A stretch of 9,017 nucleotides of DNA from Octopus sinensis (lineage: Eukaryota), in assembly GCF_006345805.1 (NCBI RefSeq), contig NW_021828292.1, positions 1-9,017 on the forward strand, given 5' to 3'. How positions within the stretch are numbered: the stretch's first letter is position 1; each line of letters starts with the position of its first letter. This document shows positions 3,308-9,017 of this stretch, in pieces. The position numbers were made by a program, and so were the translations under genes. The notes under the pieces were generated by a model. The model was not told the DNA's origin. It did not search any database and saw nothing but the letters and a program-made list of their open reading frames with translations.

Positions 3308-3389
3308 AAAGCAAGAAATAAAAGAAAGAAAGATAAATGAAAGAAAGAAAGAAAGATAAATGAAAGAATGAAAGAAAGAAAGGAAGAAA
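3308..3389. repeat. (GAAA/GAAT)n low-complexity tract
   Basis: Direct reading of the sequence. Confidence 0.85.
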
Positions 3390-3429
3390 CTATGTTCTTT
3401 ATGGTAATCTTCCAAGAGTTACCTCCATA
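3388..3429 (+). mobile_element. Short RTE-like LINE fragment in inverted orientation (NYVLYGNLPRVTSI)
   Basis: 3406-3427 matches the reverse complement of 5419-5440 at 20/22. The peptide resembles the RTE 'LYGxLPxVTxTI' stretch from recall. Confidence 0.55.
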
Positions 3430-3454
3430 TAATTCGGTGTTTGTTCCCCTGCGT

Positions 3455-3612
3455 TCTTCGCAGACGAACACTTTGCTCCAGAATTCCTTCTCCTGCATTG
3501 CTCTTAATAGGTCTTTTTTTCAATAGACCAGTCTCTTTAACCAGATGGTCAATAAATGTCCTGGCAGGATGACCCCCTAAACTGTTCTCATGTTGGTTCC
3601 CACATCAGTATG
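3455..3612 (-). mobile_element. RTE-like LINE, 3' piece of a decayed ORF (LMWEPT*..GHPARTFIDHLVKETGL..DLLRAMQEKEFWSKV)
   Basis: Manual translation with frameshifts and a stop. Resembles the RTE C-terminal pattern 'LLWEPxHGxRxRGRPxxTYIDxLxxDTGL...AMxDRxxW'. Confidence 0.8.
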
Positions 3613-5345
3613 GCGATCTGGCAGAAGCGTTAGCACACCGTGCGAAATGCTTAGCGGTATTTCGTCTGCCGCTACGTTCTGAGTTCAAATTCTGCCTTTC
3701 ATCATTTTGGGGTCGATTAAATAAGTACCAGTTACGCACTGGGGTCTATGTAATCGACTTGACCCGTTTGTCTGTACTTGTTTGTCCTCTCTGTGTTTAG
3801 CCCCTTCTGGGTAGTAAAGAAATAGAAATAGGTATTTCGTCTGCCGCTACGTTCTGAGTTCAAATTTCACCGAGGTCGACTTTGCCTTTCATCTTTTCGG
3901 GGTCGATTAAATAAGTACCAGTTACACACTGGGGGTCGATATAATCGACTTAATCCGTGTGTCTGTCCTTGTTTGTCCTCTCTGTGTTTAACCCCTTCTG
4001 GGTAGTAAAGAAATAGAAATAGGTATTTTGTTTGCCGCTACGTTCTGAGTTTAAATTCCGCCGAGGTCGACTTTGCCTTTCATCCTTTTGGGGTCGATTA
4101 AATAAGTACCAGTTACGCACTGGGGTCTATGTAATCGACTTGACCCGTTTGTCTGTACTTGTTTGTCCTCTCTGTGTTTAGCCCCTTCTGGGTAGTAAAG
4201 AAATAGAAATAGGTATTTCGTCTGCCGCTACGTTCTGAGTTCAAATTTCACCGAGGTCGACTTTGCCTTTCATCTTTTCGGGGTCGATTAAATAAGTACC
4301 AGTTACACACTGGGGGTCGATATAATCGACTTAATCCGTGTGTCTGTCCTTGTTTGTCCTCTCTGTGTTTAACCCCTTCTGGGTAGTAAAGAAATAGAAA
4401 TAGGTATTTTGTTTGCCGCTACGTTCTGAGTTTAAATTCCGCCGAGGTCGACTTTGCCTTTCATCCTTTTGGGGTCGATTAAATAAGTACCAGTTACGCA
4501 CTGGGGTCGACGTAATCGACTTAATCCGTTTGTCTGTCCTTGTTTGTCCTCTCTGTGTTTAGCCCCTTGTGGGTAGTAAAGAAATAGATATTTCGTCTGC
4601 CGTTACGTTCTGAGTTCAAATTCCACCGAGGTCGACTTTTCCTTTCACTCTTTCGGGGTCGATTAAATAAGTACCAGTTATGCACTGGAGGTCGATATAA
4701 TCGACTTAATTCGTTTGTCTGTCCTTGTTTGTCCTCTCTGTATTTAACCGCTTCTGGGTAGTAAAGAAATAGAAATAGGTATTTTGTCTGCCGCTACGTT
4801 CTGAGTTCAAATTCCGCCGAGGTCGACTTTGCCTTTCACATCCTTCGGGGTCGATAAATTAAGTACCCAGTTTCGCACTGGGGTCGATATAATCGACTTA
4901 ATCCGTTTGTCTGTCCTTGTTTGTCCTCTCTGTGTTTAGCCCCATGTGGGTAGTAAATAAATAGGTATTTCGTCTGCCGCTACGTTCTGAGTTCAAATTC
5001 CGCCGAGGTCGACTTTGCCTTTCATCCTTTCGGAGTCGATAAATTAAGTACCAGTTACGCACTGGGGGTCGATATAATCGACTTAATCCGTTTGTCTGTC
5101 CTTGTTTGTCCTCTCTGTGTTTAGCCCCTTGTGGGTAGGAAAGAAATAGGTATTTCGCCTGAGTTCGCTTAGTGGTATTACGTTCTGAGTTCAAATTCCG
5201 CCGAGGTCGACTTTGCCTTTCATCCTTTCGGGGTCGATAAATTAAGTACCAGTTACGCACTGGGGTCGATATAATCGACTTAATCCGTTTGTCTGTCCTT
5301 GTTTGTCCTCTCTGTGTGTAGCCCTTTGAGGGTACTAAAGAAATA
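3612..5345 (+). mobile_element. Head-to-tail array of nine type-A tRNA-SINE units; one headed unit plus eight headless monomers
   Basis: Units at 3612-3830, 3831-4021, 4022-4211, 4212-4402, 4403-4586, 4587-4777, 4778-4963, 4964-5148 and 5149-5345. Only unit 1 has the head seen at 8850. AGTATG is duplicated at 3607-3612 and 5346-5351. Confidence 0.95.
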
Positions 5346-5533
5346 AGTATGTGACTCATTACTTCATCCTTGTTACGAAAGCAGTCTCCACAGAATTTCA
5401 GTCTTTTCTTCTTAATGGTGGAGGTAACACTTTGAAGATTGTGTGGGAACTGCCATTTGATGTTAAGGCTGCTCTCAGAAGTAATGCGCATGTTCCATCT
5501 AGGTTTCTTTCCAGAGTCTTAGTCCATGTAGTG
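5346..5533 (-). mobile_element. RTE-like LINE, middle piece (TTWTKTLERNLDGTCALLLRAAL/NIKWQ..VTSTIKKKRLKFCGDCFRNKDEVMSHI)
   Basis: Overlaps track ORFs 5398..5637 and 4898..5491. Joins in frame to LMWEPT at 3612 once the array and one TSD copy are removed (ATG AGT CAC ATA CTG ATG TGG GAA). Confidence 0.85.
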
Positions 5534-5921
5534 TGGAGGCGCAATGGCTCAGTGGTTAGGGCAGCGGACTCGCGGTCATAGGATCGCGCTTTCGATTCCC
5601 AGACCGGGCGTTGTGAGTGTTTATTGAGTGAAAACACCTAAAGGCTCCACGCGGCTCCGGCAGGGGATGGTGGTGATCCCTGCTGTACTCTTTCACCACA
5701 ACTTTCTCTCACTCTTACTTCCTGTTTCTGTTGTACCTGTATTTCAAAGGGCCGGCCTTGTCACTCTCTGTGTTACGCTGAATATCCCCGAGAACTACGT
5801 TAAGGGTACACGTGTCTGTGGTGTGCTCAGCCACTTACACGTTAATTTCACAAGCAGGCTGTTCCGTTGATTCGGATCAACCGGAACCCTCGTCGTCGTA
5901 ACCGACGGAGTGCTTCCATCC
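5534..5921 (+). mobile_element. tRNA-derived SINE type B, full length, 13-bp TSD
   Basis: A box TGGCTCAGTGG (5545-5555) and B-box-like CTTTCGATTCC (5589-5599). TSD agtccatgtagtg at 5521-5533 and 5922-5934. Second copy at 8210. Confidence 0.95.
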
Positions 5922-6015
5922 AGTCCATGTAGTGCAGCCGTATAAGAGCACGGCTTGTATTGCTGCTCGAGAAAAATATAGTTTTAATTCCTGTTTGCCA
6001 ATACAAAGCTTAAGA
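5922..6015 (-). mobile_element. RTE-like LINE, 5'-most recognisable piece (LKLCIGKQELKLYFSRAAIQAVLLYGCTTWT)
   Basis: LLYGCxTWT is typical of the post-RT region of RTE-clade LINEs. The frame is continuous across the SINE B TSD. The upstream boundary is approximate. Confidence 0.8.
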
Positions 6016-6892: not shown

Positions 6893-7031
6893 ATGCATAT
6901 AAGTATATTCTAATTGATGACTTTAGTATATATACCATATATTAGTGAACATACGAAATACCTTCTATAAAATACCTAAGAAAACCATACACATTGATGA
7001 CTGTTGTTATAACTGGCAACTACAATATGCA

Positions 7032-7389
7032 TACCAACCACATAGTTCTGGGTTCAGTCCCATTGCGTGGCACCTTGGGTAAGTGTCTTCTGCTATAGCT
7101 TCAGGTCGACCAAAGCCTTGTGAGTCGATTTGGTAGAGAGAAACTGAAAGACCGCCGTATCTGTGTTTGTGTCTATCTGTCCGTCAGTCTGTCCCACATC
7201 AGCGCTTGACAACCGATGTTGGTGTATTTACGTCCTCGTAACCTAGCGGTTCGGCAACAGACCGATATAATAAGTACCGGACTAAAAAAAAATATAAGGA
7301 CTGTGGTCGATTAATTTGACTAAAAATTCTTCAATGAGGTGCCCCAGTATGGCCGCAGTCTAATGACTAAAACAAGTAAAAGGTAAAAG
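7032..7389 (+). mobile_element. SINE type C, 5'-truncated and more diverged, almost no internal microsatellite
   Basis: Colinear with 2160-2549 (ggttcagtccc, tggcaccttgggtaagt, cgcttgacaaccgatg, atggccgcagtc, aacaagtaaaag). Confidence 0.85.
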
Positions 7390-7448
7390 CTACCTAATAT
7401 AATAAAACACGATGGCGCATCTGCAAAATACTCAAGTTAACCATACTA

Positions 7449-7920
7449 GGCGCAGGAGTGACTGTGTGGTAAGTAGCTTGCTTACGACCCACATGTTCCG
7501 GTTCAGTCCCACTGTCGTGGCACCTTGGGCAAGTTTCTTCTACTATAGCCTCGGCCGACCAAAGCCTTGTGAGTGGATTTGGTAGACGGAAACTGAAAGA
7601 AGCCCGTCGTATATAGTATATATATATATATCTGTGTGTGTGTGTGTGTGGTGTGGTGCGTGTGTGTGTGCGTGTGTGTGTGTGTGTGTGGTGTTGGTGT
7701 GCGTGTGTGTTTGTGTGTCTGTGTTTGTGTCCCCCTAGCATTGCTTGACAACCGATGGTGGTGTGTTTAGTCCCCGTCACTAGCTGTTCGGCAAAAGAGA
7801 CCGATGGAATAAGTACTGGGCTTACAAAAGAATAAGTCCCGCGGTCGAGTTGCTCGAGTTAAGGCGGTGCTCCAGCATGGCCGCAGTCGAATGACTGAAA
7901 CAAGTAAAAGAGTAAAAGAG
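7449..7920 (+). mobile_element. SINE type C, full length, internal (TA)/(TG)n at ~7610-7727
   Basis: Starts ggcgcaggagtg like 2124 and ends with an (AGTAAAAG)2 tail. No convincing TSD (only atact). Confidence 0.92.
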
Positions 7921-8209
7921 TATACTGACCGCTGTTTAAATCGCCATATTTTCATTGGTGATGTAGACAAACAATGGCGCCATCTTCCCACGCATCCAGC
8001 TGCGAAGCTGCTGATTTGTGGCGGTTGTGGCTATTCAAGTTTCTTCGGCTTCTGTTCCAAAATAACATAGCTTAAAATATATTTTATCACCATGGCTATC
8101 ACCATCAAAAAAAAAATCCAATATGGCGTGATTTACAAACCGAAAGTTGTTAAATTAATGACCTCTTCAAACAACAGTGCTACAGAGAGAAGATGTATTG
8201 GGTAAATGT

Positions 8210-8598
8210 GGAGGCGCAATGGCCCAGTGGTTAGGGCAGCGGACTCGCGGTCGTAGGATCGCGGTTTCGATTCCCAGACCGGGCGTTGTGAGTGTTTTTA
8301 TTGAGCGAAAACACCTAAAGCTCCACGACGCTTCCGGCAGGGGATGGTGGTGATCCCTGTGTACTCTTTCTTTCACCACCCTTTCTCTCACTCTTACTTC
8401 CCTGTACCTGTTGTACCTGTAATTTCAAGGGCCGCCTTGTCACTCTCTGTGTCCCGCTGATATCCCGAGAACTACGTTAAGGGTACCGTGTCTGTGGAGT
8501 GCTCAGCCACTTACACGTTAATTTCACGAGCGGGTTGTTCCGTTGATTCGGATCAACCGGAACCCTCGTCGTCGTAACCGACGGAGTGCTTCCAACTA
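8210..8598 (+). mobile_element. SINE type B, full length, ~13-bp TSD
   Basis: A box TGGCCCAGTGG (8220-8230) and B box GTTTCGATTCC (8264-8274). TSD at(t/g)gggtaaatgt at 8197-8209 and 8599-8611. Colinear with 5534-5921. Confidence 0.95.
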
Positions 8599-8756
8599 AT
8601 GGGGTAAATGTTAATTTGCTGTGTGACTGGAAGAGAAGGGAATACTTTCTCGACGGGATGGTCAGAGAATGAAACGTTCTGCAAGAAGTGATGTTTTTCT
8701 CTGGCCTGAACAGCAAAATTACGTTTTTTGAATCAATGAAAACTAACAAAATGTGG

Positions 8757-8849: not shown

Positions 8850-9017
8850 GGCGGCGAGCTGGCAGAAACGTTAGCGCGCCGGGCGAAATGCTTCGCGGTA
8901 TTTCGTCTGTCGTTACGTTCTGAGTTCAAATTCCGCCGAGGTCGACTTTGTCTTTCATCCTTTCGGGGTCGATAAATAAAGTACCAGTTTCGCACTGGGG
9001 TCGATATAATCGACTTA
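8850..9017 (+). mobile_element. SINE type A with intact head, running off the window end
   Basis: ggcggcgagctggcagaaacgttagc head (A-box-like TGGCAGAAACG) and B-box-like GAGTTCAAATTC. Body gtcgactttg(c/t)ctttcatcctttcggggtcgataaataaagtaccag resembles the Meta/Sauria-type conserved SINE domain from recall. Confidence 0.93.

Follow-up and report, generated by a model that had tools for sequence, protein, structure and literature searches.

The 9,017-bp stretch analyzed here (the window) covers positions 1 to 9,017 of contig NW_021828292.1 of the Octopus sinensis assembly GCF_006345805.1 and contains, at 3607-5351, a block of nine tandem units derived from a short interspersed nuclear element (SINE). 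A sequence-only reading of this DNA had described one headed unit followed by eight head-less monomers of 184-197 bp within a single AGTATG target-site duplication (TSD), and had proposed that all nine units were inserted in one event. Motif starts, blastn and alignment confirmed this layout, and the duplication is indeed found at 3607-3612 and 5346-5351. The single insertion of nine units was not borne out as stated. Positions of the features of the block are given below.

3607-3612, no strand: 5' TSD AGTATG, the same as 5346-5351 (direct reading)
3613-3830, plus strand: U1, the sole headed unit, SINE positions 4-237, head proper at 3613-3655 (blastn, alignment); it has a private 15-bp deletion right after the B-box-like motif and a run of four thymines (T4) at 3705-3708 (alignment, list of T runs)
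3831-4021, plus strand: U2, a head-less 191-bp unit that shows no substitution and no gap against U4
4022-4211, plus strand: U3, a mosaic whose 5' part equals U5 and whose 3' part equals U1 (unit alignment, perfect run at offset 381)
4212-4402, plus strand: U4, a copy of U2 (unit comparison, offset-381 run)
4403-4586, plus strand: U5, head-less, 184 bp, with a single GAAATA tail (motif scan, alignment)
4587-4777, plus strand: U6, head-less, 191 bp, with the junction GATATTT (motif scan, alignment)
4778-4963, plus strand: U7, head-less, 186 bp (motif scan, alignment)
4964-5148, plus strand: U8, head-less, 185 bp (motif scan, alignment)
5149-5345, plus strand: U9, the last unit, 197 bp, with a rearranged 5' end (direct reading, 13-column insertion in the alignment)
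5149-5157, 5158-5166 and 5167-5179, plus strand: 5' order of U9, reading GGTATTTCG, CCTGAGTTC and GCTTAGTGGTATT in turn, the last head-like and A-box-like, followed by ACGTT... (direct reading)
3705-4508, plus strand: two-unit block of 381 bp, 2.11 copies at 100% identity (offset self-comparison, Tandem Repeats Finder)
5346-5351, no strand: 3' TSD AGTATG (direct reading)

Tandem Repeats Finder (TRF) detected a tandem array at 3693-5345 with a period of 191 (8.7 copies, 89% matches, score 2578), and an alternative period of 381 for the same interval obtained a higher score (4.3 copies, 92% matches, score 2689). Nine in-register starts of the form G[G/A]TATTT[C/T]G were identified in the block, at 3656 (inside U1), 3831, 4022, 4212, 4403, 4587, 4778, 4964 and 5149, and a tenth was found at 8897 in an independent SINE copy. 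The resulting unit lengths are 218 bp for the headed U1 and 191, 190, 191, 184, 191, 186, 185 and 197 bp for U2 to U9. Using a consensus of head and body as a blastn query, we found that U1 corresponds to SINE positions 4-237 and that the remaining units begin at position 48, so that the head (positions 4-47; 3613-3655) is present once in the array. The repeated part spans SINE position 48 through the GAAATA tail (the 3'-terminal 190 bp) and follows U1 eight times, head to tail. All eight junctions consist of ...AAATA directly followed by G[G/A]TATTT, and the units end precisely at the SINE 3' terminus, the tail being complete and free of flanking bases. The array contains no gaps and no Ns. 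Independent full-length insertions would each have their own head and their own boundaries; instead, U2-U8 start at position 48 and share one common junction. The organization found is that of SINE-derived satellites, in which partial-SINE repeats are accompanied by a longer terminal unit reaching the SINE terminus: eight units of 48-237 follow a 5' unit of 4-237.

Several further details of the sequence-only reading can be judged from these units. The common start point holds in that the eight junctions read alike, although U9 is rearranged after 9 nt. The B box was said to be kept in the monomers, and a B-box-like motif, GAGTT[C/T]AAATT (GAGTTCAAATTCC), is present in 9/9 units. The unit consensus has no T4 run, as had been noted, but 7/9 actual units (U1-U7) now carry one, the first being that of U1 at 3705-3708.

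The clearest trace of growth within the array is the 381-bp duplication. When the sequence was compared with itself at an offset of 381, we found that 3705-4127 is identical to 4086-4508, a perfect run of 423 bp, whereas the longest perfect run at all other offsets is 64 bp. U2 and U4 show 0 differences. U1 and U3 differ at four sites, all of them 5' of alignment column 139, and the 5' part of U3 equals U5. These comparisons place the crossover mid-unit, within a 42-bp identity block at 3705-3746 (also 4086-4127 and 4467-4508). There have been no substitutions between the 381-bp copies since the duplication. This pattern is the signature of a single in-register unequal exchange or slippage between U1 and what is now U5, with a shift of two units. 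If the 381-bp duplication is not an assembly artefact, two units are younger than the insertion. A perfect duplication with a mid-unit crossover therefore implies that, barring assembly error, the nine-unit state was not produced by one retroposition, and that in-register unequal exchange operates at this locus. Unequal exchange had been considered in the sequence-only reading and set aside: it now accounts for the last growth step, and for the older steps it can be proposed by inference. The claim that the monomers carry different diagnostic substitutions likewise holds only partly, U2 being equal to U4 and U3 being a mosaic of U5 and U1.

We treated U3 and U4 as the later addition and analyzed the other seven units (U1, U2, U5, U6, U7, U8 and U9) as the older set. 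Their pairwise difference ranges from 4.0 to 10.8%, with a mean of 7.7%. Across 160 columns, 9 were parsimony-informative against 2.6 expected under a star model (P=0.0002); giving CpG sites a weight of x10 raised the expectation to 5.4 (P=0.04). Shared states alternate along the array, linking U2 with U6 and U1 with U5. Three states are common to all units and absent from the family copies outside the array, two such copies being available per column. Two rearrangements are private to the locus, namely the 15-bp deletion of U1 and the complex indel of U9. Judged by these columns, the older units are not cleanly star-like. The older part of the array seems to have formed early and in a short time.

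The element itself belongs to a family with dispersed copies that carry their own TSDs, as is characteristic of SINEs. A 76-kb chromosome stretch of Octopus bimaculoides (L001) contains approximately 15 copies of the head and core of the array SINE. Most of these copies change to a different 3' module after position 166; one, at 40897-40605 on the minus strand, has the array-type 3' module and an 11-bp TSD (TATAAGGCCTA). An N10 gap interrupts this copy at 40798-40806, and the presence of the same ~50 bp on either side of it is an artefact of assembly joining that could be mistaken for a partial dimer. A further array-type copy was found on scaffold_285125 of ENA ERZ23499442 (L033, 543 bp). The sample is labelled as a metagenome, and the scaffold holds a full octopus-type SINE copy and a piece of another octopus repeat; presumably, this is cephalopod host or prey DNA in the sample. 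Taken together, the copies describe what appears to be a dispersed, modular octopus SINE of ~237 bp. Behind the shared head and core (positions 1-166), the family presents either the array-type module ...GTTTGTCCTCTCTGTGTTTAGCC...GAAATA or the module ...GGCCTTGTGCCTAGAATAGAAAAGAATATA, the latter being the commoner in L001. The two 3' modules imply two partner long interspersed nuclear elements (LINEs) or tail swapping. The tail (G/A)AAATA occurs one or two times.

ARAGORN identified no tRNA in the SINE head, and Rfam returned no tRNA, 5S or 7SL match to it, even at E<=10. The only evident motif of RNA polymerase III (Pol III) type in the SINE is the B-box-like sequence; the A box was assessed by eye alone. 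Translations of the repeat matched, in the protein collection, only Octopus bimaculoides proteins with exonised copies. When the open reading frames (ORFs) spanning the junctions were compared with the same collection, five matches were obtained, all to solo or exonised SINE copies in Octopus and none across a junction. A second search of the collection contributed no more. Exact look-ups of eleven ORFs of the window, like look-ups of three further proteins, returned no record. In the 76 kb of O. bimaculoides we found no array with a period of at least 60 among the ~15 superfamily copies, only one of which is of the array subtype. Searches with SINE k-mers in the metagenome, prokaryote-genome and viral collections returned chance matches of 19-30 nt or none.

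The strongest hairpin predicted for the head has its apex at SINE position 48, where the head-less units begin. Each junction forms a small palindrome, since TATTTC (positions 50-55) is the reverse complement of the tail GAAATA. Eight identical junctions need represent only one event rather than eight, because unequal exchange copies the junction along with the unit. Two microhomologies were considered and found insufficient as explanations. The monomer start (GGTATT) has GTAT in common with the 3' flank (AGTATG), yet the base at the junction is G where A would be expected. The tail shares GAAAT with positions 34-38 of the head, yet an exchange at that point would retain GCTTAGC, which is absent from the junctions. 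No microhomology explaining the junction exactly was found when tail, head and 3' flank were compared. The shared GAAAT also bears on an argument made in the sequence-only reading, namely that head and tail have no homology to seed an exchange: the two do have this motif in common, and no such homology is needed for unequal exchange once two units exist. A retroposition-linked founder is favored because the repeat ends exactly at the SINE 3' terminus, which a random DNA duplication would reach only by coincidence. The founding junction of the tail with position 48 was probably linked to retroposition rather than made by random DNA duplication.

The 5' end of U9 differs from those of the other monomers. 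Its stretch GCTTAGTGGTATT (5167-5179) is identical at 12/13 positions to 3649-3661 of the head and is not found in the other monomers. As a separate observation, U9 positions 5164-5176 (TTCGCTTAGTGGT) match the Pol III A-box consensus TRGCNNAGTGG at 10/11 positions by eye. This sequence lies ~25 nt upstream of the B-box-like motif of U9, which is the only internal unit with both motifs.

We propose, with a probability of about 65%, that a tandem array amounting to a minisatellite developed from, and within, one SINE insertion, its founder being linked to retroposition and its later growth to unequal exchange. The 6-bp TSD points to the insertion of a nearly full-length octopus SINE of ~237 bp into the host remnant. 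One retroposition-linked accident would then have produced a dimer of a headed and a truncated unit. Either a second, 5'-truncated SINE copy integrated into or at the tail of the first copy, or a single template switch to the 3' end of a second RNA occurred during target-primed reverse transcription; we give these two variants about even odds, and under either of them an end at the SINE 3' terminus would follow automatically. The 76-kb O. bimaculoides stretch has two sites where superfamily SINEs of the same orientation, some of them 5'-truncated, directly adjoin one another's tails, and a truncated copy at a tail would therefore be ordinary. Early on, DNA-level expansion and contraction may have built most of the seven older units, partly in steps of two units, with unequal exchange copying the founding junction into each new unit. 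The most recent step, to judge from the perfect duplication, was an in-register unequal exchange or replication slippage between units two apart, adding exactly 381 bp. No function of the array is evident. Transcription of multimers from the locus by Pol III is unlikely, because the headed unit has a T4 run 90 nt in and the internal units have no head; the array is an ordinary, probably neutral repeat with variable copy number.

Several observations weigh against this scenario of growth by unequal exchange. The excess of informative columns disappears when CpG sites are given a weight of x30, and the seven older units, when compared for it, showed no gradient of similarity between neighbors. 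Measured against the solo copy at 8850-9017, which lies 3.5 kb away and provided a within-genome comparator for the array units, the older units differ by 7.1% on average, about as much as they differ from each other, and U8 and U9 by only 3.5%. Taken alone, the pairwise distances of the older units would fit a near-simultaneous origin. Four states of U1 recur in an unrelated O. bimaculoides copy and U7-U9 have the alternatives in common with other copies, which hints at heterogeneous sources. Finally, the perfect 381-bp duplication could be an assembly artefact. Alternatively, the seven older units may have been made in one target-primed reverse-transcription event, with only the last two added later at the DNA level. 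Such multimeric retroposition could have proceeded by repeated switching from position 48 to the 3' end of the next SINE RNA, or from a Pol III transcript of a tandem master. It would account for the one TSD around the whole block, for the head being confined to the 5'-most unit while every unit ends at the true SINE 3' terminus, for older units that are about equally diverged and equally far from the solo family copy, and for unit variants that match the states of unrelated copies. The predicted hairpin apex at position 48 could be a pause or processing site, and the unit consensus lacks a T4 run. However, this route requires at least six switches at the same nucleotide followed by one full-length read, with no guiding microhomology, since cDNA end and acceptor tail are of the same sense and not complementary. 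Derived sites are shared more often than a star model predicts, U9 departs from the simple junction, and a single founding junction combined with the unequal exchange demonstrated here gives the same pattern. The ~15 superfamily copies in the 76 kb of the related genome include no second array, a comparison of very low power. We therefore regard multimeric retroposition of the older units as rather unlikely. As for read-through of the present locus by Pol III, one of the routes offered in the sequence-only reading, it is at present blocked by the T4 run in U1. We give still less credence to a general mechanism of concatenation at the RNA or cDNA level, in which the reverse transcriptase of the partner LINE would stop at position 48 (or the RNA would be cut there) and jump several times to the tail of another SINE RNA within one integration event, such that arrays of a head plus n monomers in a single TSD would recur genome-wide.

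The possibility that the assembler over-expanded the array, above all through the 381-bp duplication, and that the true allele has seven units has only a slim chance in our view. Its appeal lies in the 100% identity over 804 bp within an array that is otherwise 4-11% diverged, and in the N10-gap artefact with duplicated flanks seen in the O. bimaculoides copy of the same SINE family. Yet gaps and Ns are absent from the array, the breakpoints lie where the units are identical, as they would after a real homologous exchange, and a recent real duplication would look alike. Another route that had been suggested, in which a circular monomer RNA would be reverse-transcribed in rolling-circle fashion as for non-LTR retrozymes, is hardly credible here. 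The ~190-nt units are within the range of 170-400 nt of animal retrozymes (PMC7229834), and the fixed junction could be a ligation site. However, Rfam cmscan detected neither the hammerhead ribozyme that defines this route nor another self-cleaving ribozyme in the window (E<=1) or in 3590-4250 (E<=10), the 44-nt head of the 5'-most unit could not come from a circle limited to positions 48-237, and the units are heterogeneous.

The sequences around the array comprise the remnant into which the SINE was inserted and a solo copy of the same family.

3390-3606, minus strand: host, 3' part, a decayed and frame-shifted ORF remnant (three-frame translation of the empty site, TRF)
3308-3389, minus strand: (CTTT)n tail after the host ORF remnant (TRF)
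5352-5520, minus strand: host, 5' continuation, broken again by an unrelated second SINE at 5534-5921 (translation of the empty site)
8850-9017, plus strand: independent solo copy of the SINE family of the array, with SINE positions 1-168 present before the window ends (168 nt at 95.8% by blastn)

When the block and one AGTATG are removed, the minus strand reads ...KDEVMSHILMWEPT*, and the joined flanks give ...DEVMSHILMWEPT* (...MSHILMWEPT*). The flanks thus join into a continuous reading, in line with the claim that removal of the block restores a LINE frame, but the restored frame runs for only six codons to the stop and belongs to a frame-shifted remnant whose LINE identity was not confirmed by the tools used. 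The host is a decayed, frame-shifted, retroelement-like ORF remnant. It resembles the C-termini of LINE ORF2 and is probably the C-terminal tail of a non-LTR retrotransposon ORF2. The stitched host peptide of 142 aa had no match in the protein collection and none in Pfam, and no copy of it was found in L001. On the plus strand, the tail of the remnant appears as (AAAG)n at 3308-3389, adjoining the 3' end of the ORF remnant (minus strand), and may be its microsatellite tail.

The second, unrelated SINE is ~390 bp long, starts with the head GGAGGCGCAATGGCTCAGTGGTTAGGGCAGCGG... and is present in two plus-strand copies, at 5534-5921 and 8210-8601. Their TSDs, of 13 bp (AGTCCATGTAGTG; 5521-5533 and 5922-5934) and 10 bp (GGGTAAATGT; 8200-8209 and 8602-8611), both exceed the 6 bp of the array, and the copy at 5534-5921 interrupts the same host ORF remnant as the array. 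Interspersed repeats at 2040-2572, 7028-7392 and 7443-7919 have 9-12 matches each in the 76-kb O. bimaculoides locus; translations like ...CPRCH...GTEP... recur among them, and a similar piece flanks the SINE on L033. Purine-rich and simple-repeat tracts lie within 447-1477 and 1850-2054, including (AGAC)n at 477-811, an (AG)n-rich tract at 951-1301 and (TA)n at 1850-2054. In O. bimaculoides, L001 positions 66580-66042 (minus strand) and 3764-4540 (plus strand) hold clusters of three or four same-orientation superfamily SINEs that abut at their tails with spacers of 0-14 nt. The members of these clusters each have their own, partly truncated, head and differ in age. Such tail-abutting clusters suggest that the partner LINE prefers tail-like targets.

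The locus offers a view of a SINE becoming a tandem repeat in its original insertion site, with the founder, the TSD and the trace of a recent unequal exchange all visible. The "library" model of how satellites are born depends on early stages of this kind, for which the documented cases are mainly from reptiles. Should many arrays share the same junction, the locus would instead point to concatenation of RNAs by the reverse transcriptase of a LINE, which would be a new way of making tandem DNA. The array could also serve as a marker locus. For the founding dimer, template switching of the kind that produces chimeric retrocopies is a possible route, as in U6-L1 chimeras: there, switching by the LINE reverse transcriptase reportedly joins two RNAs in one TSD, with a 3' end fused to an internal or 5' point. 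Known chimeric retrocopies result from a single switch rather than from six to eight switches at one nucleotide.

That SINE-derived tandem arrays exist in other animals, as the sequence-only reading had stated, is documented for squamates (PMC10702118) and for a limpet (PMC11121367). The growth of squamate SINE-derived satellites (sSats; Vassetzky, Kosushkin and Ryskov 2023) has been ascribed to duplication and unequal homologous recombination, and their spread over multiple loci and subtelomeric bias have been shown (PMC10702118). Like these sSats, the octopus array combines partial-SINE tandem repeats with one longer terminal unit reaching the SINE terminus; the short sSat loci also have few and variable units, and in some arrays the monomers alternate in a dimeric manner (PMC10702118). 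Unlike them, it belongs to another phylum and an unrelated SINE family, its units all keep the SINE 3' tail, and the block lies in one clear TSD. The PcH-sat of the limpet Patella caerulea likewise consists of tandem repeats in a mollusc and derives from a Nin-SINE, with which its 179-bp monomer has a large segment in common, but it is pericentromeric and makes up to ~10% of the genome (PMC11121367), whereas the octopus array has nine units and is still in its founding insertion. SINE multimers formed by repeated insertion, such as jerboa Dip/B1 (cited in PMC10702118) and the L001 clusters, resemble the array in having same-orientation SINEs placed against tails. They are, however, separate insertions with their own (partial) heads and ages, in contrast to the eight head-less units here, which have a single junction in common. 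Non-LTR retrozymes of animals (Cervera and de la Pena 2020) carry a type I hammerhead in each unit, give rise to circular RNAs and are thought to spread through RNA (PMC7229834); the octopus array shares with them tandem genomic units within 170-400 nt, but no ribozyme was detected in it. We found no report of octopus SINE arrays in the literature searched, and recent octopus repeat annotations, in which SINEs represent 4-12% of the genome, leave such arrays unmentioned (PMC13282606, PMC12988792). The octopus array is a further case of the known architecture of SINE-derived satellites and minisatellites.

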